In this document: positions 17,716 through 55,663 of the stretch, piece after piece
Layout: every line of letters begins with the position of its first letter
How positions within the stretch are numbered: the first letter of the stretch is position 1
DNA from: Pocillopora damicornis
Lineage: Eukaryota
Direction: 5' to 3'
Assembly: GCF_003704095.1 (NCBI RefSeq)
Contig: NW_020843606.1
Span: 248,001 to 312,000 of the forward strand
Length of the DNA stretch: 64,000 nt
The notes under the pieces: generated by a model
Told to the model about the DNA's origin: nothing
Database searches by the model: none
Seen by the model: only the letters and a program-made list of their open reading frames with translations
Translations under genes and position numbers: made by a program

Positions 17716-20700
17716 ATGCCTCTCCTAGTACGGGGCTGGCTGTTAGTTCAAGTTCTGACAATTCTTCACTCAAATCAGAGGAACACCGTCCACGGGGGAA
17801 TAAGTAAGTCTTTTCTACTTGTTCTAATGTCTAGATTTCTTTGAGCGATCCCTACTCAGTCGGCCTTTACTTTAAAGAAAGTTTTCCGTGAGGGTCAAAC
17901 TATTTTTAAACACAGACGCACAAGATCTATCGACAATGAGATTTGGTTTTCCTATGCAAAGTGAGACGTGTTCAAAGCTTTCTGAGCATCGTATTTATTG
18001 CGATATAGTTCAACTACGCACAAATCAAAAGAATTTGGACAGATCCAAACACTTTTATTTGCTAATTTCATTTACTTAAAGCAAACATAAACTTGTCTCT
18101 AGTCCTACTACACCTACACTAAATAAATAGGAGATTGATTTGAAATTAGGGACGCATTTTCCAGACTTATCCAGCTAGAAATGTTAGTGTGAAACCATGC
18201 GCCTTTCAATATACCTCATTTTTTATGAACATGCATGAATGTCTAAATCTTCCGTAGGGATTTGCTGAAGAGATCGAATGTTGATTTTTGGCTCAGTTAT
18301 TCAAACTGAGAAAGAAATTTAACAAGGAGTCTTTCGCCTTTTGTGAAAAAAGAGTTGATGAAACGCTCGAAAGCTGGAATTCAATACATCTACATAATAT
18401 CAATTTCGGAAAGCTACCCGCGTTCATTTTGGGCAGTTTTTTTAGTGAAGAGGATAACAACATCTTCGCAGTTTTTCGCAAGAGTAACTGTATTTGTTCA
18501 GGCAATTTTGAAAACGTATTGTTCAAATGATTGTCTATTAACTCATTAAGGTAATTTTTCCGCAGGGAAAAAAAGTGATCGATTATTATTGATTGTTATT
18601 GAATGAAAGACCTTTTGTTAATCCTATTTGTATCGTTTCCCGGCCCTCTTCTTTTGTAAAGAAATGTATCTTCTTTTATTGAAGAAATCTTTCCGCCTCT
18701 GCAAACAAATAGATCTTCATTTACAAGAGAAGAAATAAAATAGGACAAAGAGCACAAAAGCGTTCGAAATATCATAAAAATTAAGTTCCTTTTCCCGTCG
18801 TTATCAATGTTAAGCTTCGGGTTGGTCTTGAAAATATTGATCTTTTCCTGAAACCACGCACTAGCAAAGCAAGCATGCATCAGCGGACGATATTTGCCAC
18901 ATATGCCACAATTTTGAATAATTTTCAGACCGCAAATTAACAATTTTAGAACCGAGTCAGCCCCAGAGTTTCGGCGGATCAAATATTTCATCGTTTGGTA
19001 CTTTGAATTTGTTAACGCACAAAGAACATTTCTAGACATCAAACCACATTTGAAAGGAATTTATCGAGGGTCTCTAACCATGAGAACATGGGGAAGTCTT
19101 TGCGGTTTCAATTGAAGGATCTTTGTTAAAGAGAACTGATGGCGCCATAAAAACGCTGTTTTTGAACTCACAGTTTGACAACAGGATTGCGGAGATATGC
19201 AAAGAAAAACTTGTTTTTTCAAAATTACTTTTTTCCATGGAGATCATTTGTTATTTATTGAAAATAATGACAATTTATTTGTAATTAGTTAACTAATGAC
19301 AGAATCAATTCAATGCTCAGAAGAAAAAAAAAAGGTTTACCAATATCAGGTGCTCTTTTGAACGTACATACGTGAAGATTGAAAAATGTTCCGCCCTTAT
19401 TGAAGTGAATATGCCGTAAATACTTTGTTGCTTAGAAAGGTCGCCACTTTCTGGGGTTTGCAAACCGCAGTGAATGACGCATGCGGCGAAACGTGCCAAG
19501 TGATACGCGCGAGAAGTCTTAAAAGATATCGTGTGATAAATATTCGTATCTGCACGTTAATGGCTGTTTATTAAACATGACGTTGTATTACTAGGTACGA
19601 ATTTGTTTCGATTGTTTCTCGTCCATAATTACTTTATATTGGCTTTACATCTCATCCAAGATAAATCTATTTCCAGAAAAGCGCTTTCTTGGAGAAAAAA
19701 CATCTTTAAAATGATTTTATTTACGAAAGATTAGTTTTAAAAGTTCACAATTATTCTCATAAGAGAGAATGTAGGGAATGCTTTGCTTCAGTTCCTCGCC
19801 GAACCAAATCTAGTCACGTGCCGTGTTTCCATAGGAATATCAGCGCTGACATAAATGCATTGCGAAGCACTTGTCTCTCGCTAAATTTTTGTCGTCTGGG
19901 TAAAGTATTGACATTTTCCGCATTGAAAACATGTTGCCAAACTTGATGAGTTTACCACATTTTTCATCTACTGAAGCACCGTAAATTTTTAGAGCTATGC
20001 TTGACTTGAAAAATTCTCAATTGCAGAAACAAAATTCTGGCTTTGATGAACCTTATAATTAACGCAAATAGGGTAAACCTTCCTTGAAGATCACAGAAAC
20101 TTTATTGAACAATTACTATGGAAGTGATATTAAGTTCGATTGAAATAATGTCTCCATCCAGAGATCGAGGGATAAAAATAAAACGAATGATTCCAGAAAA
20201 AGAACGATAAAAGATCATTTCACTGATAAACTAATATTAATGACAATTGCAATACAGTAGAGCATAACTCTCTTCCTATATTGATTAGCATTAATTCATC
20301 TAACAAGCTGTGAAAGACTGAAAAAGCCTTCTAATCATTGAACAAATTCACTAAGATAGTTTAAAAAGCAATAAGGATTTTCCCTCTTATGATTTAACTA
20401 ATTAGGATTTATTTCAATTCTTTTTTTTTTGGCTATTAGTGTTGTTATTAGTATTACCGTTATAATATTGGATCACTACTGATATTGTATATTGATTGTT
20501 TTTCAGATGATTGTTACTCCCTCATCACTGCAAACTCAAAGTTTTCAGCTTCTTCGAGTAACGTCCCTGGTGGTCCAGGGTTCGCAAAGATTAATGGGAA
20601 TGTAACGTGGTGTGCAGCCATTCCAAACGATATGCAATATCTGACAGTCGACTTAGGTATGACACTTCCATCTCTTATACCTTAAGTCAAAAGCTCTTCG

Positions 20701-23700
20701 CTGTGTCTTTAAAATCTTTCAAGGGAAAGTAGATTTAAGACTTTTGTTTAAGTGACAGTTAGTTTTTTTAAATGTTCTACGTACGCTGTATGGTTCCAAA
20801 GGGCCAACGTCATTGGGCGGTGGATATAAAAACTTCAGGAAGATAGCCATCTATGTGATTCACTTGTCCGCCAACTTAGCGAAACGATTTCTACAAGACG
20901 GTTTTCTTTTTTTGAGCCCTGTGTCATCTTCATTAAGATCTTCAATGAAAAGAAAATGTATTGGCACCTCCATTACGTTTCGGGTCTTTCTGAAATTTTA
21001 ATTTGTCTCCCCCACTTCTCCATTTCAATGTTGCCTAGTGTTAAAAAAAAAACGGTCACTAAATTTTTTCACCATTGTTTAGGGAGAAGGAAGGACTTTC
21101 AAATAAATAATAAAGATGAATTGCAAGATTTTTGTTAATTATGTTGAGTTTGTCTTTTAACTTCTTTTTAAGTTGCTAATTTTTTAATTTTTATTTTATT
21201 TATCTTCATTGCGCTCATAAAAAGATGATTCCTCCAGTACTAAGTACTATATCCAGTACTAAGTACTATATATAATATATATAATAGATATATATATAAT
21301 ATAATAATATATATATAATAGCATTACTCTTCAACTTCTTTAACCATTATTTTCTAGGTTTTAGTCTCTTGTTTGATCGTGTCGTCATGCAAGGGTTGCC
21401 AAACTCGAGAAGATCCGTATCACAATACAAGTTGAGCTACAGTGCCAACAATCAAGTTTATACCCCTATTAATAACCAGGTGAGACCTAATGAAAGCAAA
21501 AACAAAAGTAGATCAATCCAAATTTTTCAATTGTGATGATCTGATAAGGAATACATCGTGAGCTGGAAATCAAAGAAAAGGTTACTTATCAGTCATCACG
21601 GTCTTCGTGGATTACTGATTACAATTAAAACTCATGGATACTTAATTCATGTTTTGTTTTTCATTAATTTCAATTCAATTTAGCCTCTCATTTATCCTCT
21701 AGTTTGAACCAAAGTGGTAAAATTATCAGTTTCTCACCGTCGCTGTTGCCATTATCGCTAAACTGAGTGATCGTTATTCGCTAAGTGTCATTCGTTAGTT
21801 GTTAATTGCTAATTGTAAATCGCCTGTGGGTCCATCGTGATGGTTATTTTTTATTTCTCATCTTATCCCTAATCGCAATCGATTTTTTGGTAATACTTCC
21901 TTGGAAATAAAGTTGCTCCTTTTCATTTGTCTTTCAGTATTTTTTTGGAAGTTTGTACAACGGTAATTCTCTGAAGGCAACTGATCTCACCACGCCTCAA
22001 ACTAGCCGATACGTGAGGTTTTCTCCAATAGAACCTAAAGGAGTGAATGAAAACTACTTCTGCATGCGAGTGGATGTACAAAGCTGTCATAACGGTAAGT
22101 TTGAAATTACCTCCTTCTATGGTCCTTGTAAAGTGTAATAAGTGGAGTTGTGAGCAAACCCGCCTTTATTGTGGCGGGTTCACATTCGTTATCCGTCAGT
22201 TCACCTAAACTGAAAGCAAACTCATTAAAGTTGCCATTCAACTCAGTTATTTTGAAAGTTGTCCGGGATCATATTGTACAGTTTTATCTGCTGTGACCGT
22301 AGGGTCAGATACATCATGCCGGCATACATTTCGACATACTGCCATGATCACGGCATAGGGCATAATTCAAGCATAATGACAAATTCCCTTGATGTTACAG
22401 TTCAACAAGAGATAAATTCTGTAGCCTGAGTGCATCCAACAGTAAGCCTCTTTTTCTAGCTCGCGCTTCAGAAATTTGAGCCGGTAAAATGTCGTGTTCT
22501 GAGCCACGGTAAGCTACGTTGTACCTGTTAGTAATAGGAATATGAGAGGAAGGGGAGGGGGTTGAAAAGCTTAAAAGCTATTCTTTTAGAGCGAGTAAGA
22601 AGTAGGATAGAACATGACAGTTAATTTTTCCAGGAAGAATTGATTATGGTAAGGATAACTGTTCAGCGTGTTAAAGCGCTCTATCCAAGATAGGCCACTT
22701 TGATATTCAGATGCCACTCGCTTAATCTACCTTACTGAGGCTTACTTATTCAAGTCCTTTTTATCAGAGAGGTACATTGGAATTCAGGGCCTGTCGGGAG
22801 CGCTAGAATGTTTAGTGGTATGTAGTTGAGGATCCCAGAATCAGCAGAATTAGCTTAAGAAAAAGGAAAGAAAGCCTTTAAACATAAAATTATGAAAATA
22901 TACACATTTAATGACATTTTAGTTTCGCTATCTTATTATCGCTATGATAGTAAAAACAATTGTTAAGAAGTTGAGGAAAACCGCGTGTATTAAGTGCTTG
23001 TTTCGTAAAATGGGGTCTGATGCGTGTCTTTCTCTCGTGCTGAATTACAAGACCCAAATCCTATCGATGGCGGATGGACCGAGTGGACGGTTTGGAGTCA
23101 ATGCGCCCGTTGTGGTGGTCTCAAGGCTCGCACAAGGACGTGTACCAATCCTGCGCCTGCGTTTGGTGGTCTGGATTGTGAAGGGGCTAATACCATTACT
23201 CAGTTCTGTCCTAACTATTGTCCCGGTGAGTATTCATGGCCTGGACTACTCTTTAGAGAAAAACGGAACGAGAAATTACATCACGTTGCTTCATCAATGT
23301 TACCTTGATAACATAGTATCACCAGATAACAGCAGAAAAAGCGTTGGGTGTGAATGGGGGAAAAGAAAACATTTCTATGCACAACCATGAGCATGGGACG
23401 AACAAGAAGTTAAGTCACTTCTCGAGGATTCGAACCCAACTCCCAATTCTTTGGAGCTCAAGATTTCTTTCTTAAATATGAAACTAACCCACGATGTTTT
23501 CTTCATAGTTGATGGTCAGTGGTCCGCATGGGGTGCGTGGTATCCCTGCACTAAAACATGTGGTCAAGGAACGAAATTCAGAGTACGTGATTGCGTTAAC
23601 CCACCTCCATCCAATGGTGGAGCATTCTGTGTTGGTCAAGGATATCAATCTGACCCCTGCAATAACGGCCCATGTCCAGGTAGGCTTGTATCATGTAAGA

Positions 23701-26700
23701 TCATGGACTATTTTTCGATTGATGCTCTGAAAACCACAACCAAAGTTCTTACACTGGCCATTCAAAACAAACTTAGATACGAGGAGGAGCCCATGAAAAC
23801 TATAAATAAGAAAAAATAAATAAAAACAAACATCTGATTGATTGAGATGGTAGCTTAAGTTTTAGCAAGCTAATCACAGAGTGAAATGAAGAAAACTCAA
23901 TCAGATCCTCGATTACTTTTGACACTCAATTAAAACTTGCCAACTCCAACCATTGATTGTGCATTCTTAAAGACTCTAAATTAAAGTTATCTTGCTTTTT
24001 TTTCAGATCCTACAACAGTCCCACCACCAACAACTCAGCCAGGTAACCTGCTTAAGTTTCTTCCCTGAACGATATTTCCTCATCAGTTTCATATCATAAT
24101 TAATTAGAACACGCTGTGATTGAAGGGTTTGACTGCGATGGTAGCTTATTGGTTAACGTATTTACTACTATATCTACAGCTACCACCACAGAGGCTACCA
24201 CTACTACTGCGGCAACGACAACAGAAGCAACTACAACTGCAGCTACGACTACAGAAGCTACCACTACCGAAGCAACTACAACTAAGGCTGCTACCACCAC
24301 TGCAGCTACCACAACGGAGACTGTCACCACAACTGAGGCTCTTACTACGACTAAGGCTGCCACCACAACTGAGGCTGCTACTACAACTGAGGTTGCTACT
24401 ACAACTGAGGCTGCTACCACAACTGAGGCTACTACCACAACTGAGGCTGCTACCACAACCGAGGCTGCTACCACAACAGAAGCTGCTACCACAACTGAGG
24501 CTGCTACCACAACTGAGGCTGCAACCACAACTAAGGCTACTACCACAACGGAGGCTGCTACCACAACTGAGACTGCTACCACAACTGAAGCTACTACCAC
24601 AACTGAAGCTACTACCACTGAAGCAACTACCACAGAGGCTCCAACCACCACGGCTGCCCCTACCACAGCTACACCTACAGGTTTGTAAACATGTGTTGCA
24701 GAGGTATTTATCCTTGTACCGAAATATTGTATACCATTTTGAATCCATGAACGCGGAGAAGATTAGTTGACAAAATTTGAACAAACATTTCATCCGTGCA
24801 CCTTTAGGTTATTAATACAACGATTTATAATCTCCAGAGTTTGTTTGTGTAGTTCATATTTGTATCATCTTGGAATCCTGTCACCGATGCGAATAATAAA
24901 AATAGGTCAACAGATTTTCCATCTATTAATAGTTGTTTCCTTTAATTTTCGGCTACCATTTCGTTCTCTTTCACGTAGAGTGCTTCGCTCTCTCTTCTTT
25001 CCGACATCACCCTTTTTTCACATCTTTTTAGTCGTATCTTGTCCTGAAATTTTTTTTTGCTTCGCAAACTACAGGAATACCTGGCCTCTCGGATATCGAT
25101 ATCACATTTGCCTTGAGTGCGACATCAGCCAACTCCAACGCCACTTACACATTCATGCAGAACACACTTAAAACATTCATCGACAAGTACGGTGCCAACC
25201 AAATCCAATACAGTATCATTGTATATGGCGACCGCGTCGAACGTGTGGTGACCTTCAATAGCTCCTTTCCCCCAACTGACAATCAACTGAAATCAGCCAT
25301 CGACGCGCAGTCAGCATTGGCGGGAGGTCCTGTCCTAGAAGATGCATTGCAGGAAACTTTTAAAATCTTCAACGAGTCAAAAGGAAGACCTGCTGTCAAG
25401 AAGGCTCTGGTAGTTGTCACAGATAACAACTCTGGAACAGATAAGGGAAAGCTCTCAGCTGCTGTCAAAACGGTAGAAGAACAAAAAGTTTTAGTTATTT
25501 CTGTGGCTGTTGGAGGCGTCGTGGATACAAATGAGTTGGCGATCATCTCACCCAATCCCCTAGATGTTATATCGACAAATGTGAATGAAATTCCGGAGAA
25601 AGTGGGTGACCGCGTCATCGACAGAATATTGAGACGTAAGGAACTATTTTGCCTATTATCCACTGAACATACCTGGTAGTCCAGTCTCCGTAGCTTATTT
25701 TTTTATGAACGTAAATCGTTGAAAATCATACCACTCATTGGTGGAAGGCACCAGTAATAAACTTGGGTTACCTTGAAAATGCATTTGAGTGAAAGGGTAG
25801 GGGCTTGAAACCAGGACCTTGCGACTAGGGCCATATAGTCTTAAAAATAATTTGAGAATTAAAAGTAACGACTGTTTTTTCCTGTTAACCAGGTACTATC
25901 CCAGATATAAACGTGGGTTTTGCCATCCGAGACGAAGAAGTAGAATCTATAGGTCTCTTCACGTTGATGCAAGACACTATTAATACAATTAACCATCGGT
26001 ATGGAACAGAAAGAGTCAAATACACAGTCATTTTATACGGCAACATCAATTCTACGAGTGTGGACTTCTCCAACCGGAATGTCAATCACAGGGAGCTCAT
26101 ATCGATTGTGACGAGTTTAGAGAGAGTTCCTGGGGCTATTGATCTTCAAGCAAAGCTAACAGACGCAGAAGCTTTATTCCGATCTTTACCAAGTATACAA
26201 GGGAGCAAGAAAGTGTTCATTGTACTCACAGATGTGACTGCGGGTGGAAATGAAAGTGCAATTACTTCAGCGGGTGCTTCATTGGTAAGGGAAGGAATCC
26301 TTGTCTTCTCAGTGAATCGTAGTGAAGATGGAACTAACGTGGTGACAGTAACACAAATTGACTACCTTGATATTCCAACCTTCACTACGGATCGGTCAGT
26401 TGTCATTGCAGAGACCATCATAAGGAAAGCATCGTCAGGTAAAATATCAGCTTTTTCTGTTAGGACACGATTCATGATGCCTCTAACACCAGCTAAAATA
26501 TGTCTCATTCATCAACCGTTTCTCGGTAGGAAGTCCCTTTTCCCATACATGGCATCCTCCACAAGCTTTGCCTCTTATCCTTAGGCAGGTTAGATGTTTT
26601 CCTGCAAAGTTCGCCACCGTTTTCGCCAGTCGTCTATTCCATTCGCCCTTCGACTTAATCATCTCTTAAGCTTGATGAAAAAATCATCTTTTCATTTCTC

Positions 26701-32700: not shown

Positions 32701-33199
32701 TAAATTTTATTTCAAGTATAAAAAAACACCATAGAGCTTGCACCTTAAAAACTAGAATAAGCGTCAGTTTATAGAAGGGTGTAACTTCTACCACTTCTCT
32801 ACCTTAGTGCCCTTGATTCAACTTTGGCCTTTGAACTTTATCTGTCTAATAACTAAAATACTACGAGCGCCCTGATTGGTCAAAAAATTGCACCGGTAAA
32901 CGCTCAGAAAAATTGGTCAAAAAATTTATGAAAAAGTACTTTTCTCGCGTCCTCCCAACATCGCAAGTGAGTTACTACGCTGATAAATCAATATAACGTG
33001 CTGTCTATTGCTTAAATATTCTAACAGCATTTGACTCATTTCGGGGGGGCTGAATCTTATTGTCAATTACTTTTTTTTCAACGGTATCTCGATTAGAGGC
33101 TTAATTCTAAATCCCTCATTGTTAAGGATAACTGAAAGCCTGAAGTCATTATTGTTTCCTTTTCTATGGCTACAGGGAGAAATGGTGGAGATCAAGTGA
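17716..33199 (+). CDS. Coadhesin-like single-pass adhesion protein, paralog A: SP - F5/8C - 2xTSP1 - mucin-like Thr stalk - 3xVWA - TSP1 - F5/8C - TM - cytoplasmic tail; ~1545 aa
   Basis: Exons: 17716-17803 (SP MPLLVRGWLLVQVLTIL); 20507-20656, 21358-21479, 21938-22094 (F5/8C); 23052-23225, 23509-23679 (TSP1); 24007-24042; 24180-24680 (TTTEAA stalk); 25075-25635, 25893-26438, 26799-27359 (VWA); 27904-28068 (TSP1); 28167-28328, 28770-28909, 29542-29686 (F5/8C); 30141-30182; 30361-30451 ([32 protein letters not shown]); 31167-31360, 31874-32168, 32371-32683, 33176-33199. The terminal exon and its frame are ambiguous: the stop could be 32698, 33199 or 33207. The domain set matches coadhesin, a known coral skeletal organic matrix protein. 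Confidence 0.88.
22146..22565. repeat. ~420-bp dispersed repeat, copy 1 (intron 4 of paralog A)
   Basis: Colinear with 34073-34470, e.g. shared ctcagttattttgaaagttg, acagttttatctgctgtg, cgtagggtcagataca, gcataatgacaaattccct, ctctgtagcctgagtgc. Confidence 0.85.
24180..24680 (+). repeat. Coding minisatellite of ~29 15-18-bp units (consensus ACCACAACTGAGGCTGCT = TTTEAA) forming the mucin-like exon of paralog A
   Basis: Tandem units are directly visible, bounded by a tacag acceptor and G|gtttgt donor; phase 1-1, 501 nt. Confidence 0.93.
30838..30972. mobile_element. 135-bp MITE with ~30-bp TIRs and an 8-bp TSD (Merlin/hAT-type)
   Basis: TIRs GGATCAATATCAGTATCTGAGCCAACTGCCCAC / GTGGGCAGTTGCCCAGACACTGATATTGATCC. 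Perfect AATTGTTT duplication at 30830-30837 and 30973-30980. Confidence 0.88.
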
Positions 33200-33884
33200 G
33201 ACTATAGCGTTTAAGGACGGCATACAGCAAACCATGAACAAGGAAGGAACCCAATTTAGTGAAGTCGGAAAATCGTGAAAATATCCAAGATCTTTCCATA
33301 ACGTTCGAGTTTAAAAGAGATGTCCAGCTTTTATTTTGTTTACAGTGTCTTTTAGGAAAATGCACCGTAAGTGTTTGAGAATGTGTACTTCGTGCAGTCA
33401 TAGGGAATACTTAGTTTCGTTTAGAATGGCAATTATTATGAAGATGTTATGTGTTAAAGGAGATTTAATTAGTTATAAAAGCAGTTTTAAGTCACATAAG
33501 TTACCAACTCGATCGAGTTTCATGGCCGAGAGGGCCTTGGAACAGTTTGACCAGCGAGCTACCAGAAGCAAGCGGATAGTTCTGTATTCAAATATCAAAA
33601 ATGTAATAATATAATGAGGAAAAAAACAACGCTTATTGTAGCTTTGATCTGTTTGATTTGTGGGTAGATAGTTATTGCTGCACAATAATTATGACCGTAC
33701 AGCATCCAAATTTGTATTTATCAAGTGTAATTCCCATTTTCTCAGTCGATGCTTTACGGAATATCTAAAACTTCAAGGTGGAAAGAATGCAACTTTCTTA
33801 TAGTCTGATAACTTTATTTGTAATATTCTCTAATTACGCATAAAAGGTTAAGTATTCTTTGGGTATTGTTTCTACTTGTGACTC

Positions 33885-33894
33885 AATAAATAAA
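33885..33894 (+). terminator. Candidate poly(A) signal of paralog A (overlapping AATAAA x2)
   Basis: AATAAATAAA ~690 nt after the predicted stop, followed by GT-rich sequence. Confidence 0.4.
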
Positions 33895-34072
33895 AGGTTA
33901 AAATTAAAAGAAGTACAATTGTAGTAGATGTGTATTGTGTATAAAGAAGAGTTGTTGTTTGAGGCAGGATGAATATGAATACGGCAGAATCCGAAGGTCA
34001 GAGTTTTGATTGGTCGCGAAGATTTTGTCCCCGCTCGTGACAAGACGAAAAAACATATTTTCATTCAGCCAA

Positions 34073-36400: not shown

Positions 36401-36439
36401 AGAATGGGAACCTCTTAGTTTTCAAACACACATTAACAC

Positions 36440-36445
36440 TTTATT
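36440..36445 (-). terminator. Candidate poly(A) signal of paralog B
   Basis: TTTATT on + (AATAAA on -) ~1 kb after the stop, followed on - by gtgttaatgtgtgtttg, a GU-rich element. Confidence 0.45.
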
Positions 36446-46400: not shown

Positions 46401-49400
46401 TTAGTTGAAACTTTAACCATTACTTTTGCTGTGGAGTAAATCATTATCCGTTAATTTCTCGGTGGAAGGAAGGATCCCTCGGTATACCTTTCTTTTTTAC
46501 TTATGAGTACCAATTTGGAAGCCGAAAACACTAATAGAACTCACCTGGACAGACGTTGGTGCTACACACTCGAGTCTGGAGGGTATCTCCAACACAGGGC
46601 TTCCCACCCTGGGAGGGAGGGGGATTATCACACTGCCGTGTCCGGGTTTGAGTTCCTCCTCCACACGTCTTGCTGCATTGTTTCCATGGAGTCCACGGAG
46701 AAAATTTTCCATCCACTAGCAGCAATAAAGAAAAAGAAGCATGGTAGATTTTCAACATCATTTGTCCTCACGGTTATCTTTACCTTTTTAAAAGATCAAA
46801 TCTACGCATTCGGGTGCCAAGTTACTGTCAAGAAAAACGAAGTATTTAGCGTCGAAATTACAATTTCTGGGACAAAATGTTACAAATTCTCTGCTTTTAT
46901 ACAAAAAAATAAAAATCCAAACTCATCACCCCAAAAGGAATGTCGTACGTAACTCTTGGTTAACTTTCCAGGTTCTTCTTCCTATACCTCACCTGGACAC
47001 GATTGTGTGTTGCACCTTTCAACCTCCACGTATCCGCCAGTACATCCTGATCCGTCATTGGACGGTGGTGGATTGGTACAGGCACGTCTTCTTGATCGTG
47101 TTCCACCTCCGCATGTTGCACTGCATCCTGTCCATTGGGCCCACTCAGTCCACCCGCCGTCCACTGGAGACAAAAGGAACGAAGACATTCAATCTTTTTG
47201 TCTCACGAAACAGATATTTTGTAGATTCCTTCACTATGAGGGTAGTTTTATGCCTTCGATCCCCTCTTTCTTACCTGGACATGCTTGTTTGTTGCACTGT
47301 TGAGACTCCTCTGAGTTTCCACTGCAGCTATTTCCACCGTGTGCAGGAGTAGGGTTAGTGCAAGATCTTGTCCTCTTTTGTGTTCCTCCACTACACGATT
47401 TTGTACAGGTCGACCATTCACTCCAGTCGCTCCAGCCGCCATGTACTGGGCCTATGCAGAGAAAATTTTGTATGAAACCTGCGTTTATCAACTAATGTTA
47501 GGTTTCCAAGGTTTCTTTGTTCTCCTTTTGAGCGCAAGAGAAGGTCTGTTCACAATAAACTTGATACCACTGGTCTCAAGTAAATTTCGTCAATTTAAAG
47601 TATCGTTATTAATTCATCCGTTAACCAATTACTGATCATGTTGAGGTTCCTGAGCGACAATATTCTTGGTTGATTCTCGAGCTATTATGCACCTTTTGTT
47701 TATTTACAGTGGAAAAATCAATCCTCCTGAGTATTTCACGTGATTTCCGATGAACAAGTGCGTTCTAGTGCATGATTCGAATGAGGTATGTACGGTATTT
47801 TGGTTTTCCCTCTATAAATAGCTCACCTTAAGTCTGGTTTTTTTTTGGTATAAAGTTAAGCTATCCTTGCACTTACCTGGACACTTTCCCACATTGCACG
47901 CTTCAGATTGTAATCTTAACCCTGGGCAAGAGGCTCCTTGGTTGGATGGCGGAGGATTGGTGCACGAGCGCTGCCTCGTTCGCTGTCCGTCGCAGGATTT
48001 ACTACAGCTCGACCACTGACCCCACGCACTCCAACCACCATTGACTATTTCAGATAAAACATCATTTTTAAAGGCTATGATTAACTAGTGCGAAGTCATT
48101 GATCATAAGTGGATACAATAAAATAGAAAATAGTGACGGAGATTGCTCCCAACGGAATAAAGCATGTCAAGAAGGCTCAATTCTAAATCACTCTCCAAAA
48201 ATAGCCGAGATGAAGGAGCAGAACCAATAGAGTTGAAATATTGGAATCTTTGATTTAAATTCAGTAACTGAAAACGAACATGAACAATAAACGCCACTTT
48301 GAAACGGTTAAAGGAGAATGTTATTGTGTGGCTTCAAATGACTCAGAGTAACTCTCTTATCAAGATTTGAAATACTAAATACCAGGATATTACTAATCAT
48401 GTGTTAACTCCTGCTAAAGATATCCATGGGAGTGAGATTCTTCCTTTTTTAAATCTTTTTGAACTGATCATTGGTTTTGGAAGTTGTAATGGGCAAATAT
48501 AATACGACAATAATTTAATCGATTCATTGATTTGGACTTGATTTTGGTAAGTACCTGGGCAGCCTTGCGAATTGCAACTCTGAACTTCGTAACCATTTCC
48601 AGGGCATGTTTTGCCACCGTTCTGAGGTGGTGGGCTGGTACATTGCCTTCGTCGATAGGAGCTGCCACCGCCACACGTTTTGTCACAGGCAGACCATTGT
48701 GTCCACTCAGTCCAGCCTCCATTAACTAAAATGGAAACATGATGATTCAAAAAGGAGTCGCCTCACCATATTTGGAGTCAATTCTGTGCTGCGTAAGACT
48801 ATGTTTAGCATTAACGAAACAGGAAGATATTGTTTCGTCAAGAGTTACGGGCACAATAGAGGCCACATTTGTAATTTACTTCCTTCCCAAGGGGATTATA
48901 TTGAATTTTTACGACATGGACATACCTCAACAAATTTTTTTTTGCTCAGTGAACGAAGGTTCACACAATATGAAATGTAATTAATAAGTGAATTAGAACG
49001 AAAAAAAGCGTTTGAGTAAAAAAGGGAAAGGCTTAATTAACACATCCGGTTTCATTTACAAAACAAAAGTCAGATAAAATTGTTATAAAAACAGAATTTT
49101 TCCGTAGGATTAGCTTTTTAAACTTCTGTAGCCATTTGTAAAAGGTTCTACAGATATTATCTGCGAAATTTACTTACTGGGGCAATTTTCAGTGTTGCAA
49201 GATTGATGATCTGTATCGCTTCCTTTACAGTGAATGCCGCCATGTTGTGGTGGGGGATTGTTGCAAGAGCGCTTGCGCGTCTGTGAACCTCCTCCGCACG
49301 TCGCAGAGCAACCTGACCATGACTGCCAATTAGTCCAGCCACCATTAACTGACCAATCAGAGAAAGGAATAAATAACAAATACTTGCAAATAAATTTTAA

Positions 49401-52400
49401 AAAAGTAGAGCTGTACATCGTATGGATGTTAAGAATCTATAATCTATAATCTAATCTGTTTGCACCAGTTCCGCGCGGACCAAGGGGATGGGAGTCGAGC
49501 TGTAATAAATAGTCTCCATTCCTCTCTCTACTTCACTGGTGGTTTCAGTACAAGGTTACTGGAAATAATCACCACAGCATTTTGTTTTCAGTTTGTCATC
49601 GTTTTAGAAGCGCGGAAAGGGTTCATCTTCTTGTGATTTGTGTCCCACCCTATAATTGATCCCTGGTACCAACTTGTACCTCAGGTATCTTTGTGATACG
49701 TACTTGGACATGGGTCAGAGTTACAGTTTCGATGATCGACATTACTCCCCGCACAGTCATGGCCACCATGCTGAGGATATGGGCTGTTACATGTCCTATA
49801 CCGTGTCTGTTTCCCTCCTCCACAGCTCACCGAGCATCCTCCAAAGCTGGACCAGGGAGACCATCCACCATTAACTATGCATTTCAAGAGAAAAGGAGAA
49901 AAAGCAAGGTTTTGGGCATCAAGTATTTAGTCGATTTTCCAGCCCATGGTTTATGGGCAATAAAACAAGCGTGACTTAGATAAATGTGAATAAATAAACT
50001 ATCGCTCGCCCAAAAATTTCGAAATTTTCCTCGTGCTGAAAAAAAAAGATTATCGCTCTAGTTTATAACGGCCAGAAATTGAGCAACACACAAAGTAAAT
50101 TGAAGGAAAGTTAAAACTGTATGATAAAAATTTCAGTAGTAGGAGATATTACCCTTATTCGGGAATAGCGAAGCAAGAAGTTTGATCAACAAGAGGGACT
50201 AAAATGTTCGATCTTGAAAATTAAAGGTTTCATGTTCATTCGTTTTGGCATAAAAAAATGAGATGAGCAGTAAATACTTGCATTTAGATTATCACCTACT
50301 TGGACAATGCAGACGATCACTACAATACTTCGTTTGTTTTGCGTCTCCAACACAAGAGGACCCGCCGCCAGAGGGAGGAGGACTGTCACATTTCCTTGTC
50401 CGAGTTGCTGTCCCGTTACCGCAAGTTTTACTGCAGGCAGACCATTGTGACCAGTGACCCCAATTTCCATTCACTTGAGCTACAAGGAACCAGAACAATT
50501 TGGTTGTTTTAATTTCTAAAGGCGTAGGCGTGTTAAAGGTGGGCCAAAAGTGAATGCGACCCCTTTGTTAGTTTTGACGACGCTGATAAAACTTTATCAT
50601 AAAGTTTCATAAAATTTGCATCGTGGGAAGAATCGTGGCTGTATGAAAACATTGTGAAATGAGAATACCATTACAAAATCGTGCCCCAAAGATTTATTTG
50701 TTTGGAAAATATATTGCTGGTTGGTGGTGCATCTAAAACATGATAAGTCAAAGTAGATAGAATAATTATAGCACTTACAAGAACAGCTGTTTAGGCAAAA
50801 GGCATCTTCCCCCGAATTCCCTTTGCATGCGGCTCCTTCGAACGTAGGAATGGGATTTGAACAAGTCCTATGCCGACTCTTGATGGCATATCCAGATCCT
50901 TGACCATAAATGTGGCACTGCTGAGAACATTCTGACCAGCTGGACCAACTCGTCCATCCGCCATTTATGGGTGTCAGTTCTGCAAATGCCACACAGATAC
51001 TTTAGAAGCATAACATTACAAAATGTTTAAGCTTTTATCACACCGGCGTCACATAGGTCCTTGCCAAGCCATAAAAGGTGTTGTTCTCGAGAAAAATGTT
51101 GGAAATTTGCATGTTATAATAGCTGTAATCATATGAAAATCATATGTGTGCACTGCGGTTGAAGAAACGAATATAGAATCGATCATCGCAGTTATGAGGA
51201 CTACTGAACTAGTAGTTGAAATAAGGCCTGAACAAAATTCAGGCCCGTACGGGATTTGAACCCATGGCCTCTGCGATACGGGTCTGAATTTTTTTTCAGG
51301 CCTTATTTCAGGAGCGATTCTATAGTCGTCATCATGTAATGTTACAATCGACAGACGCGTATCCTCTCCTAATTTCAGTTCCTTTTATACTTTCCTCTTT
51401 AAAGGAATTATCGATGTGCATTGGAGAGAAGGCGGAGAAGTCTGATGGAATTTCTTCTTTGTTTGGTATGTCCCTTCGATCAATTATTTTTACGCCTTCC
51501 CATGCGTCCTTAACCTTAAATTCAGATATTTACCGCCGTTGCATATATTAACGTCCACTCGCAGACAGAGACCATTTGCGTCTGTTTGTGGTTCTCTCGG
51601 ATTAAACGATACATATCGAGCTTTGACAGGTTTCTTCAAGTTCGTTTTGGCCACAAAATCACCATCATCTATTGCACCCCAAAATGCCTGAAAAAAGGAA
51701 ACAAGCGAAAAATTATATTGCCGCGCCGGCTTAAAAAAAGCCGGAGAATAATCTTACAGTCAGCGCAAAATGAGGGTTTGGATTACGGTTCTATTAATGT
51801 TAGCATGTCTGGTCTGGTCATGGGTAGACTATATTATCAAAGAATAAAATGCAAGCAATTGCGTCAAGATCAATTGGCACTTTGTTCACTCAATGATGTT
51901 TTACCTTGGGACGTGTTCCACTATCATCAAGAATGTAATTAAAAGTGCTCCCGTCTTTACTTGTTTTTACGTAATACATTGAAACTGATTGCTTTGTGCC
52001 TGCTTTTCCTTGTATAGCCACGTGGTCTATCTTGACAACTCCACCTTGAAAAGAAACGAAACAGTTAAAAATGTATGCCTAATCACTCTTTAGTTCCTCA
52101 ACAACATTAATGCCCGAAAATAGGACTGACTATAAAAAGAAGTCATTCGCGTTGTATAATTTTCCTGATGTTTCATAAGAATAGGTGACTTGGCATTGGA
52201 GTTGACCAAAGAAGTAGGCAAAACGAAGGTAATGTAAAACATTATCTATCTATACATATTTGAATTTTTCATGCTCAGTTAGCGGTTGCCAGCACTTCGA
52301 GCTGTTGCGCAAGATGTTATTCAACGCTATGATGGCATTCCGTTGCAATGGAAATTACTTTATGGTAAAGACCCACTTGCCGCTGAAATCTCTGGAGCAC

Positions 52401-55400
52401 AAATGCCAGGCTTTCCCCAGACCATGATGAAGGACCATACAAGAAGGCACAGAGGGACTGAGAGGTTCCTTGTTTTGTGATTTACCTTGCACATTTTTCT
52501 GTCATACTTCTCGTGAAATACCCTTTCGCACACAGACCTGACTTCCAAGTAATTATCGCTATCTTTTAAACTCTTTTCTTTAAGCTTTGTCTTTGATGGT
52601 ATGCCGCTTCATGGAGTTCTGACAGTCCTATAACATATACAGTTGAAATCTACGTCAGCTACCCACCTAAATCGACAATGAGATGTTGTGCTTTGTCGAT
52701 GGTTGCCGCGCACCATATGTCGTTTCCATTTATTATTGGGTGCCCAGGCCCCAGGCTGCTGGTCGAGGCGGTGAACTTTACATTATTGTTTGAGGTGATA
52801 TATGACGGACATGCGGGCGATTGCGTAGTCGGTGCTAAGAAATAAAAGAAAAGACAAAACTCTAACGTCTGTGAAAGCAAGCTAACTGATCATTAATAAA
52901 TGACGACTGTAGACGATACTTTCGAACAGCTTACGCTCGTTTCAGTTCAAACCTTAAAAAGTTCTTAAAATCTTAAGTTAAATCAAATGATCCTTGCAGT
53001 TACATGGGCTGAAATTTATGCAATTGCAGGAAAGAAGCCTGAAAAAAAATCCGTCTTCGACGGGATTCGAACCCAGTCCCCCTAAATACTAGTTGGACGC
53101 CTCTACCAACTGACCGACGAAACCACACTTTGGGAGGGTGGGAGGGAGGGAGGGAGGTCTTAGGTATAGCCCAGACTATGGTGGTCCTGCAGTTATTAAC
53201 ATAAACTATTCAATGAGCCTTTATTTTAAGCCGACGTCACAGAGATAAATGAGAACAAATGGGAAAGAGCATTTCCTGTTGAAGAAGAAACTAACAGGAA
53301 TTGTTGAAACAAAGCATTTCCTGACGAGAAAATCGAAGGGAATTAGATATGGGAAATGACGAAAGATAACAAAAAGAGAGAGATTATGCAACAGTCACTT
53401 AAGATTAAAAAAAAAATGCACAGCCGGAAATCATGCAAAAATACTTTCGAGGTTAAATGATTAATGATTGACGCTGGTGACATTTCTTCCTTTCCTCAGT
53501 TCAAAGCTATTTAGGGAAAATTATCTCTAAAAGCGTTTACCTACGTCGTTTCCTTCATTTACGCATATGCGATACTGGGTATTCAATTAACGATAAATGC
53601 TAAAAAAAAACACGCTTATCTGGTATAAGACGACCAATGTAAAACCGGCATGACTGCCTATAAATTTTCCACGAACGCGAGAGAAAAACATCAAAGTTCC
53701 ACTTGTTCTACATATCAAACAGAGCACAGCAGTTTTAATTGATTTATCGATTTCAGTTAGATTTTAGCTTGCCGTTCTTATAGCGAGCGGTTAAGTCAAG
53801 TTTTTAAATATTTATTTTTTACCTGTTGTGCATTGAGTTTCATTAGTTTAGGGAATTTGGTATTCTATGTAAAATTAAAGCGCTATTTTTTAGACAGAGT
53901 GTAGCAGTTGTGAGAAAAAGTAACTTGTTTACCGTCCTGGGAGTTTTAGGGGTTTTTCTAATGGGTTAAGCTTGAATTATGGGGAAGAAAGCCATAATAT
54001 CTGACTAAAAACAGCGATCTTTATTTCACTGGATTAATTGCCTGGAGGTTTACCCCACCCTTGTATATGTTCTGGCGTTACTCAATATTGCGTGGCCGCA
54101 AGCCTTTTGCCATTGATGGCTAGTAAAAGAGAAATGAAATGAATCAGTTCCTGTGTTAAGATTTACTGTTGGATCCTGTCTTCTGTCAGAGATTTGTCCT
54201 TGCTTGAAGGGGTTGTTGGAAAATTTCAAACGAATAGATTAAGTTTCGTAAAGTTTGGTTTGTGGTTTAATTGCTCAACATAATGTGAAGAAAATTTTAA
54301 TTTTTAAGAGCGTAGCGTGAAACTGATCGAAGATAAGAACAGGAGTACTAAGATCGTGTAAAAGAAACTTGCAGTTTTAATTTTTGCTAATTCTTTCTTA
54401 ACTCTTGATAAAGAAACTGTTTTTGTGTGGTTCAAATGCTCCCGTGTCAAATACTTAAATGCGAAGTCCCTAATCTTGGGTAGACAACAAACACTATATT
54501 GCGCCACAAAAAAATGGGATATTGTTCAGAGTAAGATTGATATTTTTATGCCTTGGGTAAAGTTGGTAACATTATAATAACTTTGTGGCAAGAGAGCAGA
54601 CATTGCTTCAAAGTCGTTTTCAATTTTTTGAACATTGACATACACTGGATCTTGCCTTGGTGTACACCAGCAGTTATACAGCGTAAAAAAGAAAATAGAT
54701 TTGGCACGTTTACCTATAGAGACCAATATTTTTTAGTGACCCACTCGTTGAAAATCCATCACATATGAAATCAGCTAATTTTAAGCGGGAGTGTAAAGAA
54801 CAGTCTTTCAGAAAGATTTAACACAATGCAATACGCATTCTTTTAATGCATAAGGAATGTTCGTCCTATTGTTAGAAGGCAGGATGTACCATAGTGACAG
54901 GAATATGGCTGAAAATCGTCAAGTGAGATTATATTATGACAAATGCGTTGTCTTAAAATGAACATTTTTTCCTGCTTGTATTCTTTTCAATTGTAATGAA
55001 AGGCTTTATCATGGGAACGTTTAAATTACCTTAGGAAACGTGATTAGCTTCATGTAACGACTTGCTCGTCCTTTTTTGAGAGTTCGAGGAAATTAAACTT
55101 GTAACTTCAAAATTAGGAATTGATGATTAGGGAAGGTATTTGTTCAGAAAAATGTCAGAATCTTCCTTGAAAAGGTTTTTTTGATATGAAATTTCCCAAA
55201 ATTTTTTAAAGGGCAAATTATTTGAATTGTGGAATATACGCAGGTACTGCTGGGTAAAAGTGAACTTTTAAAAAGGTTTTTATGTAAACAGCATGTCTCG
55301 GTGAAAATTTTCATTCACTGTGTGTGGTTTTCTTGAGGTAAACAACTTAAAAAAAAAAAAGTTAGAATCATTTTGGATCCAAAAAAAAGTAACCACGAAT

Positions 55401-55663
55401 AAAGGTATATCATCTTTGAAATTTTTACGATAAAGAATCTACTTAAAAATTGTGTTTGATTAGGAACCGTACCTTGTTTTACAACTGTTCTGTAAGAAAA
55501 GCCTTACTGATGTTATTATACCATAAAGGAAAAAAAAAAAAAAAGGAAAGAAATGTAAAAACTTACCAGGGTAATATCCATGTCCGTAATAAGTGCCTCT
55601 TGCTTGTGAGAATACGATTGCAATTATGAACACAAACAGCCATTTCCACGAAGAACGCGACAT
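37437..55663 (-). CDS. Coadhesin-like single-pass adhesion protein, paralog B: SP - F5/8C - 11xTSP1 - short Thr linker - 3xVWA - TSP1 - F5/8C - TM - cytoplasmic tail; ~1984 aa
   Basis: Exons on -: 55663-55567 ([25 protein letters not shown]); 52834-52667, 52044-51905, 51687-51534 (F5/8C); TSP1 50979-50779, 50479-50300, 49874-49704, 49348-49178, 48725-48555, 48044-47877, 47451-47275, 47163-46993, 46715-46545, 46173-46003, 45628-45461; 45192-45148 (linker); VWA 44891-44334, 43935-43375, 43151-42600; TSP1 42299-42135; F5/8C 41801-41640, 41269-41136, 40775-40637; 40361-40302; TM 39820-39730 ([30 protein letters not shown]); 39130-38928, 38737-38452, 38094-37602, 37463-37437 (GFRHSRLV*). All GT-AG, 5955 nt in frame. 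Confidence 0.92.
39184..39355. mobile_element. Truncated piggyBac-type MITE related to 39859-40062
   Basis: Starts aaccctttcactcccaagatc and shares the internal ttt(c)ctttattctc...tgatattgt...aggag layout. The right TIR is missing. Confidence 0.55.
39859..40062. mobile_element. 204-bp piggyBac-type MITE
   Basis: TTAA|CCCTTTACACCCC ... GGGGTTAAAGGG|TTAA, i.e. CCC/GGG termini with a TTAA target duplication. Confidence 0.85.
43975..44185. repeat. Degenerate (ACTG)n microsatellite (similar tract at ~10370-10560)
   Basis: Directly visible gactgactgac runs in an intron. Confidence 0.8.
45690..45838 (-). mobile_element. Short hammerhead-derived repeat, copy 3, in a paralog B intron (core mutated)
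   Basis: Minus strand reads ACT-CTGACGT-CGGGCCGATGCTC-AAAA-CG-TC-AGC, then tttagaaactctttccgatggccaatttac...ccaccgacgcagc...gaaacttacc. Confidence 0.65.
51110..51310 (-). mobile_element. tRNA-derived SINE-like remnant with inverted arms
   Basis: Reverse B-box (gggatttgaaccc) flanked by tgaaataaggcctgaa / ttcaggccttatttca inverted repeats. A relative lies at 52985-53135. Confidence 0.6.
52985..53135 (-). mobile_element. tRNA-derived SINE-like remnant
   Basis: gggattcgaaccc (reverse B-box) and ctctaccaactga (reverse A-box-like), with the same upstream gatc.tcgcagtta...gcctgaaaaaa layout as 51110-51310. Confidence 0.6.

Follow-up and report, generated by a model that had tools for sequence, protein, structure and literature searches.

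A convergent pair of anciently duplicated coadhesin-family genes in the stony coral Pocillopora damicornis, probably with divided roles

The window analysed here is a stretch of 64,000 nucleotides from the P. damicornis genome (assembly GCF_003704095.1, contig NW_020843606.1, positions 248,001 to 312,000 of the forward strand), and all coordinates below refer to it. It holds two genes that converge tail to tail: gene A on the plus strand (17716–33199) and gene B on the minus strand (55663–37437). Their stop codons lie 4237 nt apart when the terminal micro-exons defined by RNA joints are counted, in agreement with the roughly 4.2 kb of the original prediction; a spacing of 4891 nt, from an open-frame reading, was rejected because the RNA joints add a terminal micro-exon to each gene. 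Both genes encode, in the same order, a signal peptide, an F5/8C domain, TSP1 repeats, a Thr-rich linker, three VWA domains, a further TSP1 repeat, a second F5/8C domain, a transmembrane (TM) segment and a long tail. In both exon models all introns are GT-AG, in-frame stops are absent and the summed exon lengths are multiples of three. The parts of gene A are as follows.

17716–33199 (+): gene A coding span, short coadhesin paralog; 4602 nt in 20 exons (1533 codons and a stop)
17716–17803 (+): exon 1, start codon and signal peptide, outgoing phase 1; predicted
20507–20656 (+): F5/8C-1 part a, 150 nt, phase 1-1; PF00754 E 5.4e-4, below cut-off
21358–21479 (+): F5/8C-1 part b, 122 nt, phase 1-0; PF00754 E 6.6e-4, below cut-off; 53% identical to Oculina G033194
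21938–22094 (+): F5/8C-1 part c, 157 nt, phase 0-1; 51% to Oculina G033194
23052–23225 (+): TSP1 exon a, 174 nt, phase 1-1; TSP_1 E 1.4e-5; weak acceptor score
23509–23679 (+): TSP1 exon b, 171 nt; TSP_1 E 4.9e-12
24180–24680 (+): Thr-rich mucin-like exon, 501 nt, a stalk of about 167 residues; acceptor uncertain (several in-phase AG sites); tandem repeat at 24278–24618, period 18, 19.1 copies; no Pfam match
25075–25635 (+): VWA1 exon, 561 nt; Pfam VWA E 1.6e-18; 55% to B VWA1
25893–26438 (+): VWA2 exon, a divergent VWA, 546 nt; 40% to B VWA2; no Pfam match even at E 0.1
26799–27359 (+): VWA3 exon, 561 nt; Pfam VWA E 5.7e-14; donor GTACGT
27904–28068 (+): membrane-proximal TSP1 exon, 165 nt; TSP_1 E 1.3e-5; 68% to Oculina G033194
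28167–28328 (+): F5/8C-2 part a, 162 nt, phase 1-1; PF00754 E 1.2e-4, below cut-off
28770–28909 (+): F5/8C-2 part b, 140 nt, phase 1-0; splice and phase model
29542–29686 (+): F5/8C-2 part c, 145 nt, phase 0-1; 66% to Oculina G033194
30141–30182 (+): juxtamembrane micro-exon, 42 nt, phase 1-1; predicted only
30361–30451 (+): TM exon with Cys-rich end, 91 nt, phase 1-2; 80% nucleotide identity to the B TM exon
31167–31360 (+): cytoplasmic exon C1, 194 nt; splice and phase model plus tail alignment
31874–32168 (+): cytoplasmic exon C2, 295 nt
32371–32683 (+): cytoplasmic exon C3, 313 nt
33176–33199 (+): terminal coding micro-exon, 7 codons plus stop
33200–33900 (+): 3′UTR; AATAAA at 33885

Gene A is homologous exon by exon to Oculina ACROYT_G033194, and the N-terminus encoded by exon 1 resembles that of the Oculina protein. 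Splice support from RNA covers the joints 32168/32371 and 32683/33176, each present in all four runs (from four studies), with the exons from signal peptide to TM given by the model. The juxtamembrane exon is the top-scoring in-phase candidate, predicted by a method that also recovers its transcript-supported counterpart in gene B. The RNA contigs of runs X1, X7 and X12 stop at 33885–33897, and others from X9 and X7 stop at 34297/34406; a longer 3′UTR form to about 34300–34400, with an AATAAA at 34392, may exist. Gene B and the space between the two mRNAs comprise the following parts.

37437–55663 (−): gene B coding span, coadhesin ortholog; 5949 nt in 29 exons (1982 codons and a stop)
55567–55663 (−): exon 1, start codon and signal peptide, 97 nt; 72% to the N-terminus of Stylophora P0200
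52834–52667, 52044–51905, 51687–51534 (−): F5/8C-1, three exons, phases 1-1-0-1; P0200 74–75% identical on two of the three; no Pfam match for the two pieces tried
45461–50979 (−): array of eleven one-exon TSP1 repeats, all phase 1-1; Pfam TSP_1 match on all three exons tried
50979–50779, 50479–50300, 49874–49704, 49348–49178 (−): array exons 1–4
48725–48555, 48044–47877, 47445–47275, 47163–46993 (−): array exons 5–8
46715–46545, 46173–46003, 45628–45461 (−): array exons 9–11
45148–45192 (−): Thr/Pro-rich micro-exon, 45 nt, a linker of 15 residues, counterpart of the A mucin-like exon; in P0204 and P0219
44334–44891 (−): VWA1 exon, 558 nt; Pfam VWA E 1.4e-19
43375–43935 (−): VWA2 exon, 561 nt; Pfam VWA E 8.9e-20
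42600–43151 (−): VWA3 exon, 552 nt; Pfam VWA E 7.8e-16
42135–42299 (−): membrane-proximal TSP1 exon, 165 nt
41640–41801 (−): F5/8C-2 part a, 162 nt, phase 1-1; no Pfam match; P0204 95% identical
41136–41269 (−): F5/8C-2 part b, 134 nt, phase 1-0; PF00754 E 1.1e-3, below cut-off
40637–40775 (−): F5/8C-2 part c, 139 nt, phase 0-1; P0204 100% identical
40302–40361 (−): juxtamembrane micro-exon, 60 nt; present in P0204
39730–39820 (−): TM exon, 91 nt, phase 1-2
38928–39130 (−): cytoplasmic exon C1, 203 nt; P0204 98.6% identical
38452–38737 (−): cytoplasmic exon C2, 286 nt; P0204 99% identical
37602–38094 (−): cytoplasmic exon C3, 493 nt
37437–37463 (−): terminal coding micro-exon, 8 codons plus stop
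36450–37436 (−): 3′UTR, about 1 kb; AATAAA 36459–36464; contigs reach 36452 (X1) and 36464 (X12)
33901–36449 (no strand): space between the mRNA ends, about 2.5 kb; near-zero RNA contig depth, loose-ended contigs

The transcript-derived protein P0204 matches gene B at 92–100% identity per segment from TSP1-11 through the last large tail exon, and the remainder is covered by the Stylophora coadhesin-like protein P0200 (XP_022783430.1). Across gene B, P0200 is 72–96% identical per segment, and it maps to nine of the eleven array repeats at a threshold of at least 70%, with the seventh and eighth below it. The transcript-derived protein also led us to replace the VWA2 acceptor at 43923 by 43935, and the terminal micro-exon agrees with the C-termini of both P0204 and P0219. 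Between the two genes, repeat-like open reading frames on the plus strand (34739–35378) gave no Pfam match.

Both genes are intact and transcribed, and splicing is correct wherever a junction could be checked. Spliced joints were present in RNA contigs from all four runs for gene A and from three of four for gene B (37602/37463), such that neither copy is silent, as the original prediction demanded. These contigs report the presence of spliced message and not its expression rank, and the nearly silent intergenic stretch provides an internal control. The protein cluster of gene B holds 98 member sequences, mostly from transcript-sized contigs.

How similar are the two genes? The common exon scaffold on which the prediction was built is present throughout: intron phases of the exon models agree in 18 of 18 corresponding exons, both F5/8C domains of either gene are split with boundary phases 1-1-0-1, every TSP1 repeat and every VWA domain occupies a single phase-1/1 exon, and the 91-nt TM exon, the 165-nt TSP1 exon, the 162-nt F5/8C exon and a small juxtamembrane exon recur in both. 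Common intron positions are expected of paralogs, and the match is therefore not an independent surprise. The genes differ in their TSP1 exons, twelve in B against three in A. Likewise upheld were the claims of dissimilar introns and well-diverged ectodomains: blastn of one gene against the other returned four matches, all exonic (VWA1, the end of VWA2, TM and tail), and no intron similarity, and ectodomain exons are 25–55% identical, F5/8C-1 part b being the lowest noted (25%). The TM exon, in turn, retains 25 of 29 residues.

Ten pieces of each gene were compared with Pfam. Eight matched for gene A (three F5/8C, three TSP_1, two VWA), F5/8C-1 part c and VWA2 giving no match, and seven for gene B (three TSP_1, three VWA, one F5/8C), with three F5/8C thirds unmatched. 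All F5/8C matches stayed under the Pfam cut-off (19.6–22.6 bits versus 28.2) because each exon carries just one third of the domain; PF00754 is present in the precomputed Pfam lists of full-length orthologs. The VWA domains of the pair lack the Asp-x-Ser-x-Ser MIDAS of metal-dependent VWA/I domains: the Asp is missing from 35 of 35 VWA rows in 12 proteins, and in the alignment of B VWA1 to collagen VI its position is taken by Ser. The best solved-structure relatives of B VWA1 are PTMP1 (4cn8, E 1.8e-16) and collagen VI alpha-3 (9han, E 1.9e-15).

Genes A and B are each other's closest relatives and the sole genes in the genome with the cytoplasmic tail of the pair. Searched against the 234-Mb genome, B VWA1 finds A VWA1 as its top hit after itself (55% identity, E 5e-57) and A VWA3 next, and B tail exon C3 has two matches, B itself and gene A. 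In a tree of ten database proteins (1139 columns), the A/B split receives support of 100/98, each side containing members of both Acroporidae and Robusta; a clade made up of Robusta alone is rejected by an AU test (p 0.0088). Together, these results place the duplication before the Complexa/Robusta split, that is, before the two main scleractinian clades separated, so that the old age proposed in the original prediction stands. The trees contain scleractinian proteins only, and the VWA-domain tree is rooted by the domain's own paralogs. In the latter, the VWA2 of window gene A pairs with Oculina G033194 (99/94) inside an A clade (99/97), and the A clade is recovered for VWA3 at 85/81. Since the VWA1 subtree gives no resolved A/B placement and the VWA1 of Oculina G033194 is nearer to B (67.6%) than to window A (59.7%), the placement of gene A rests on VWA2, VWA3 and the TM exon, along with the membrane-proximal TSP1 exon, signal peptide and architecture.

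Judged by its sequence, gene B is orthologous to coadhesin B3EWZ3 of Acropora millepora. The clade of gene B contains this skeletal-matrix protein, which shares a 90% cluster with P0202 from Acropora, and also contains Pocillopora meandrina B, whose exons are identical or nearly so to those of window B. The coadhesin ectodomain is recognisable in gene B from Pfam matches on exons, from the exon model and from the colinear mapping of coadhesin-like proteins. B3EWZ3 has the same ectodomain module order, a TM (at 1361–1383 according to a passage in PMC4043741) and a long tail with alignable motifs; it carries fewer TSP1 repeats than the twelve of gene B, and its VWA exons are, by alignment score, roughly half identical. 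The TM and tail of gene B line up position by position with those of proteins from Acropora, Montipora, Oculina, Orbicella and Stylophora, from which gene B is predicted to have a single TM segment and the cytoplasmic tail of the family. Gene A was rejected as the B3EWZ3 ortholog, since its VWA2 and VWA3 group within the sister A clade, together with Oculina G033194 and Montipora XP_068760301. It belongs to the wider coadhesin family of A and B types by module order, TM exon and tail, and represents a sister paralog of B3EWZ3 with three TSP1 repeats and an expanded mucin stalk.

A-type genes also exist in Oculina and Montipora, and genomic A-type contigs of other corals were found in metagenomes (L022–L027); database searches for annotated A-type proteins in Pocillopora and Stylophora yielded none. 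Gene A shares its two-TSP1 N-terminal architecture and divergent VWA2 with Montipora capricornis XP_068760301.1 and Montipora foliosa XP_068713925/6, whereas about five TSP1 repeats precede the VWA domains in the Oculina model; in the VWA2 and VWA3 trees, gene A groups with the Montipora and Oculina forms alike. Its Thr-rich repeat spans 167 residues, against about 20–30 in other A-types, and its tail lacks about 65 residues found in Oculina A, an internal deletion also relative to B. Tail motifs are conserved in A and B types and the TM across species; the GRDGYMRMK motif is kept in Pocillopora A but lost in acroporid A-types. Linkage beyond Pocillopora, implied by the original prediction, is possible. 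Consecutive numbers on one contig each suggest adjacency of the genes in Oculina patagonica (ACROYT_G033194/G033195) and Montipora capricornis (XP_068760298/300/301), as read from annotation order, which gives no orientation; the Montipora foliosa accessions, however, are 59 apart, and none of 15 metagenome loci had a contig bridging both genes in another species.

With respect to known systems, apicomplexan adhesins of the TRAP/MIC2 type are likewise type-I proteins with VWA, TSP1, TM and a short tail that are shed from the surface. Unlike the coadhesin pair, whose VWA domains lack the MIDAS Asp, TRAP has a MIDAS-bearing VWA, no F5/8C and an unrelated tail, and to our knowledge the two share no homology beyond these modules. 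Collagen VI alpha-3 and mussel PTMP1 have matrix-binding VWA domains like B VWA1, yet are secreted and, unlike B, without TM, TSP1 repeats or F5/8C. The P. meandrina ortholog bears the UniRef name Hemicentin-1, with which it has VWA and TSP1 modules in common, a resemblance remarked upon in a passage by Ramos-Silva et al. (PMC3748352). We rejected this identity, as eight ortholog Pfam lists hold only F5/8C, TSP1-type and VWA-type families: an Ig array, G2F, EGF and fibulin modules are absent from these lists and from the window exons, and hemicentin, unlike A and B, has no TM segment or tail. Coadhesin is described as well represented in the skeletal matrix, with a TM and with all peptides mapping to the ectodomain (passage in PMC4043741), as present in all four skeletal proteomes compared (passage in PMC7115838) and as expressed in aboral ectoderm cells of Astrangia (passage in PMC13060117). 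The Stylophora skeletal proteome entry named in a passage of PMC7115838, XP_022783415.1, differs in accession from the B ortholog, XP_022783430.1. Our literature search found no paper describing the convergent pair.

What might two such genes do? We think it probable that A and B are an ancient paralog pair of the known coadhesin family, encoding type-I membrane adhesion receptors with divided roles. Each would anchor an epithelial cell to the extracellular or skeletal matrix, as their domains and the Acropora and Stylophora papers suggest, with binding through the discoidin domains, TSP1 repeats and MIDAS-less VWA domains. Shedding could deliver the ectodomain to the skeleton, a route put forward for the Acropora protein, and the conserved Tyr-motif tail may couple to the cell interior. 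Both copies would then be kept by a division of labour in ectodomain length, stalk or expression, rather than by mutual binding.

The original prediction had instead proposed a two-component adhesion system, such as heterophilic partners, taken here as A and B on apposed surfaces, or anchors partitioned between tissues. That both genes are retained and intact and appear in the same RNA libraries, and that the pair is old and possibly linked in other corals, would suit such partners. Their ectodomains, however, share a module order instead of offering complementary parts, and the Acroporidae A-type tail has lost motifs kept by B, suggesting independent drift rather than a locked pair. Subfunctionalisation is the simpler account of old paralog retention; we thus regard an old subfunctionalised pair as the likelier reading and heterophilic partnership as quite unlikely. 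Association of A and B within one membrane, as a hetero-oligomeric receptor held together by the nearly invariant Cys-rich TM/juxtamembrane segment, is unlikely as well: no part is better conserved between A and B than the TM exon, which is conserved across species too, and both messages occur in the same libraries, but such conservation would equally suit homo-oligomers, palmitoylation or a shared third partner.

Two further readings question gene A itself. It could be redundant or in decay, a copy that is transcribed but has no separate function, given that Pfam no longer matches its VWA2, its tail is internally deleted relative to Oculina A and to B, and its F5/8C-1 part b has diverged so far from B's. 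Yet its 20 exons all keep an open frame and GT-AG borders, spliced contigs occur in every run, and two-TSP1 A-type orthologs are kept in Montipora, across the Complexa/Robusta split, which renders decay very unlikely. A recent, Pocilloporidae-specific inverted duplication with fast evolution of gene A since would account for the long branches of window A (0.50–0.73 changes per column) and for the missing Stylophora and Pocillopora A-type proteins in databases, but we consider it extremely improbable in view of the grouping of A VWA2 with Oculina and Montipora A-types, the supported A/B split, the AU test and introns devoid of any similarity.

Alongside the favoured reading of a subfunctionalised pair, we mention a bolder one that we rate a long shot: the convergent A–B arrangement might be a two-gene module conserved in all stony corals, its products forming a long-arm/short-arm hetero-receptor joined via the Cys-rich TM/juxtamembrane segment. 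If true, the Tyr-motif tail of this receptor, which is family-specific and belongs to no Pfam family, would inform the calcifying cells of contact with the matrix.

Two multi-exon genes on opposite strands face each other between 17.7 and 55.7 kb of the window, whose G+C content is ~38%:

17716-33199, + strand: gene A, the short coadhesin paralog; 20 exons, 4602 coding nt
55663-37437, - strand: gene B, the long coadhesin ortholog; 29 exons, 5949 coding nt

Both were delineated by splice-site scores with frame consistency, refined with database proteins and RNA contigs and then checked mechanically, and all sequence searches were made exon by exon. In the resulting models every intron is GT-AG and not one exon contains an in-frame stop. 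Eight of ten open-frame pieces on the + strand and seven of ten on the - strand match F5/8C, TSP_1 or VWA in Pfam; the pieces without a match among these 20 are thirds of F5/8C domains and the second VWA of gene A. F5/8C matches stay under the Pfam cut-off because a single exon amounts to one third of the domain. The window holds a single run of N (8837-8913, 77 bases).

The original prediction, a convergent pair of coadhesin-like receptors built on matching exon scaffolds, is borne out in detail: exon phases are identical in 18 of 18 corresponding exons. Three exons make up every F5/8C domain, of which each gene has two, with boundary phases 1-1-0-1, and every TSP1 or VWA module occupies one exon of phase 1/1. 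The TM exon measures 91 nt in A and B alike, and the two genes also agree in the length of the membrane-proximal TSP1 exon (165 nt) and of the exon that opens the second F5/8C domain (162 nt). The stops, predicted to lie ~4.2 kb apart, are separated by 4237 nt when the terminal micro-exons known from RNA are counted. Introns had been thought to lack similarity, and blastn of the two gene regions indeed returned four matches, all of them exonic (VWA1, the end of VWA2, TM at 80%, and the tail). The ectodomains are diverged, likewise as expected, with protein identities of 25-55% exon by exon; for the TM exon the figure is 25 of 29 residues, and for the tail 43-51%. Our models further add a small juxtamembrane exon to each gene, that of B being present in a transcript-derived protein and that of A predicted, and correct the acceptor of the B VWA2 exon.

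Despite the common scaffold, the genes are asymmetric: TSP1 exons number 11+1 in B and 2+1 in A, and a 45-nt Thr/Pro micro-exon of B contrasts with a 501-nt Thr-rich exon of A. The latter (24180-24680, + strand) is a near-perfect tandem repeat of an 18-nt unit in ~19 copies (84% matches), which likely varies in length between individuals and breaks short-read transcript assemblies. This may be why the databases lack a full-length A protein. In gene B, two in-phase acceptors lie 6 nt apart at the seventh TSP1 exon (47445-47451, - strand), the inner one fitting the P. meandrina model and the outer one fitting two extra residues of Stylophora; this may be a tandem alternative acceptor. The B intron between VWA1 and VWA2 harbors a (GACT)n-type microsatellite of ~39 units (43999-44153) in open frame, and a naive ORF list fuses it with the VWA2 exon.

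How closely are A and B related to each other within their genome? When the 234,350,878 bases of the assembly (4393 contigs) were searched with the B VWA1 exon, it matched 117 places, the best after itself being VWA1 of A (55%), VWA3 of A (44%) and VWA3 of B; below the VWA exons of the two genes came a very long VWA exon array on another contig, at 40% or less. The B tail exon matched only itself and A, and A and B thus form a two-member subfamily defined by TM and tail. Elsewhere, dozens of tandem VWA-sized open exons occupy one strand of genome contig G000 C255 (~53,900-126,300; loci L004, L005, L007-L012), each 30-40% identical to B VWA1; they belong either to an array of genes or to one giant multi-VWA gene.

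Among representative proteins, the B VWA1 exon retrieved 1517 at E<=1e-3. The best 150 of these 1517, which were inspected, are mainly multi-VWA collagen-VI-like proteins and single-exon ORFs, and none among them ranked as a full-length ortholog. Full-length relatives were reached via a cluster member, P0172, a partial Porites evermanni model, and fall into two groups:

Long forms: Stylophora pistillata coadhesin-like XP_022783430.1; Pocillopora meandrina CAH3111915.1; Oculina patagonica ACROYT_G033195; Orbicella faveolata XP_020631997.1; Montipora coadhesin-like XP_068760298/300; Acropora coadhesin (cluster including UniProt B3EWZ3)
Short forms: Oculina ACROYT_G033194; Montipora capricornis XP_068760301.1; Montipora foliosa XP_068713925/6; transcript-derived protein P0208

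Searches of protein databases did not find an annotated A-type protein of Pocillopora or Stylophora, for which the length window of the search or fragmented models may be the cause. An Actinostola multi-VWA protein (28% identity) was not counted as a family member, and a mammalian contactin-associated protein matched through F5/8C only. A metagenome scan yielded 15 loci, including genomic A-type and B-type contigs of other corals, in which each module has an exon of its own just as it does here. Three of these loci (L024, L027 and L023) are genomic A-type coadhesin genes from public coral metagenomes; in L024 and L023 the two middle tail exons match as a single unbroken stretch, hinting that an intron may have been lost from their A-type tail.

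How old is the duplication? Our first tree comprised VWA1-3 of ten database proteins and the six window exons (36 rows), each domain being rooted by the other two; P0172, whose model is visibly broken by retained introns and which was therefore omitted, and P0202 (replaced by B3EWZ3), P0203, P0204, P0210 and P0219 were left out as broken or redundant. In the VWA2 subtree, the short forms including window A constitute one clade (99/97) and the long forms the other (81/75), with window A being sister to Oculina G033194 (99/94). The short-form clade recurs in the VWA3 subtree (85/81), and the VWA1 subtree leaves the relations of A and B unresolved. A second tree, which covers VWA1 through the C-terminus of ten database proteins (1139 columns, no window rows), separates short from long forms at 100/98 among taxa that are all scleractinian, with no outgroup. 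Acroporidae belong to the Complexa, and Pocilloporidae, Oculinidae and Orbicella to the Robusta. Since Acroporidae and Robusta taxa are each found on both sides of the split, the duplication is older than the divergence of Complexa and Robusta; a tree constrained to unite all Robusta is worse by 19.7 log-likelihood units (AU p 0.0088). Beyond the stony corals, strong coadhesin matches, with E=0 to B3EWZ3, are described for corallimorpharians (PMC5604590).

Linkage of A-type and B-type genes in other corals is indicated indirectly, by annotation numbering. The two Oculina genes lie on one 23.5-Mb contig, and both their locus tags and their protein accessions follow directly on one another; the Montipora capricornis genes have consecutive accessions on one 52-Mb contig, and those of Montipora foliosa share a contig with accessions 59 apart. 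None of the 15 metagenome loci is a contig bridging an A-type and a B-type gene. Comparison of downstream flanks gave one 122-nt reverse match (79%, L020 versus L027) and one 33-nt match, either of which could be a repeat.

Neither copy is silent. Logan contigs from four RNA runs of four different studies, mapped onto 32001-38000, contain the A joints 32168|32371 and 32683|33176 in all four runs and the B joint 37602|37463 in three of four, run X9 having no contig at that place. Contigs of A end at 33885-33897 beside an AATAAA at 33885, with longer ones extending to 34297-34406, and those of B end at 36452-36464 beside an AATAAA on the - strand; the two messages thus stop ~2.5 kb apart, without overlap. 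Depth between these ends is almost nil save for repeat-like pieces with loose ends, and this near-silent stretch, together with the spliced joints, argues that the contigs represent RNA rather than carried-over DNA. Word depths for A versus B in the individual runs were 3654 versus 67, 75 versus 8.6, 803 versus 0, and 681 versus 12.8, but contig depth cannot rank the genes. The 90% cluster of B holds 98 sequences, many of them from transcript-sized contigs of 5-7 kb. In all four runs, low-depth contigs also cover the last intron of A unspliced (32655-33203, + strand) beside the spliced form, which could reflect a retained intron or pre-mRNA. The intergenic space further contains two ORFs (34739-35378, + strand), whose low-depth RNA contigs run into unrelated sequence like a dispersed repeat. 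Both lack a Pfam match at E<=0.1, and they may be Penelope-type retroelement fragments (a reverse-transcriptase-associated part and a GIY-YIG-like part).

What might two coadhesins do? A and B are type-I membrane proteins with identical module order, a Cys-rich TM end and cytoplasmic tails of ~280 (A) and ~340 (B) residues. At E<=0.1, Pfam gave no match to any of ten queries, namely six tail exons, A VWA2, the mucin exon and the two intergenic ORFs. Nevertheless, all species aligned share tail blocks common to both types: a basic membrane-proximal stretch, an acidic EDE-QEV, GVIQFGIE, ADEL-DYDMF and a C-terminal P-x-Y-x-E-I/V site. A further, ten-residue block is present in B types, Oculina A and window A and is lost from acroporid A types. 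A YMRM site is visible in the aligned tails as well. Compared with the B tail (38094-37602, - strand), that of A (32371-32683, + strand) lacks ~65 residues that B and the Oculina A-type have; the deletion is internal to the last large exon and specific to this lineage. The metal-site Asp of the VWA domains is missing in 35 of 35 rows, and among solved structures, matrix-binding VWA domains from mussel PTMP1 and collagen VI come closest to them.

Acropora coadhesin is described as abundant in the skeletal matrix and as having a TM segment; its peptides all derive from the ectodomain region, and the authors therefore proposed shedding (PMC4043741). A coadhesin-like protein is reported as common to four skeletal proteomes (PMC7115838), cross-linking data place one near other matrix proteins (PMC8086859), and in Astrangia larvae coadhesin-like is given as a mark of aboral ectodermal cells (PMC13060117). 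We infer that A and B each tether an epithelial cell to the matrix, in which their ectodomains can be left behind. The long TSP1 rod of B versus the short rod and mucin stalk of A would confer different reach or partners, and both copies would persist via division of labor. The original prediction of an old duplication kept as a two-component adhesion system is supported in part, as regards the age of the duplication and the expression of both copies; the two-component system itself is putative, and mutual binding of A and B is a possibility.

The coadhesin family was already known, B is its ortholog in Pocillopora, and A belongs to a sister lineage for which annotation pipelines already use the label 'coadhesin-like'. 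Our analysis shows two old, distinct coadhesin lineages, a long one including the Acropora skeletal protein and a short one, which are adjacent in Pocillopora and both expressed. A literature search for two coadhesin lineages or their convergent arrangement found no paper describing either. Our models also amend the gene B annotation published for P. damicornis: GenBank RMX54717.1 (pdam_00011543), which agrees with the window at 1152 of 1160 aligned residues, begins inside the gene, and several of its N-terminal TSP1 exons are translated in wrong frames (45461-47500, - strand; P0219 in our protein set). The P. meandrina model CAH3111915.1 is incomplete, being short of the signal peptide and of two exons, the first of F5/8C and the sixth of TSP1.

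Few proteins occur, as coadhesin does, in all coral skeletal proteomes that have been compared. It also serves to mark skeleton-forming cells, but 'coadhesin' and 'coadhesin-like' are currently lumped as one loosely defined group. Separating the two lineages helps to assign proteomic peptides and RNA-seq reads to the right paralog, and bears on the design of HCR probes or knock-downs and on how results such as 'coadhesin paralogs up in oral versus aboral tissue' are interpreted. Without being surprising or opening up a new kind of biology, the finding serves annotation and those studies of coral calcification that need to tell the paralogs apart.
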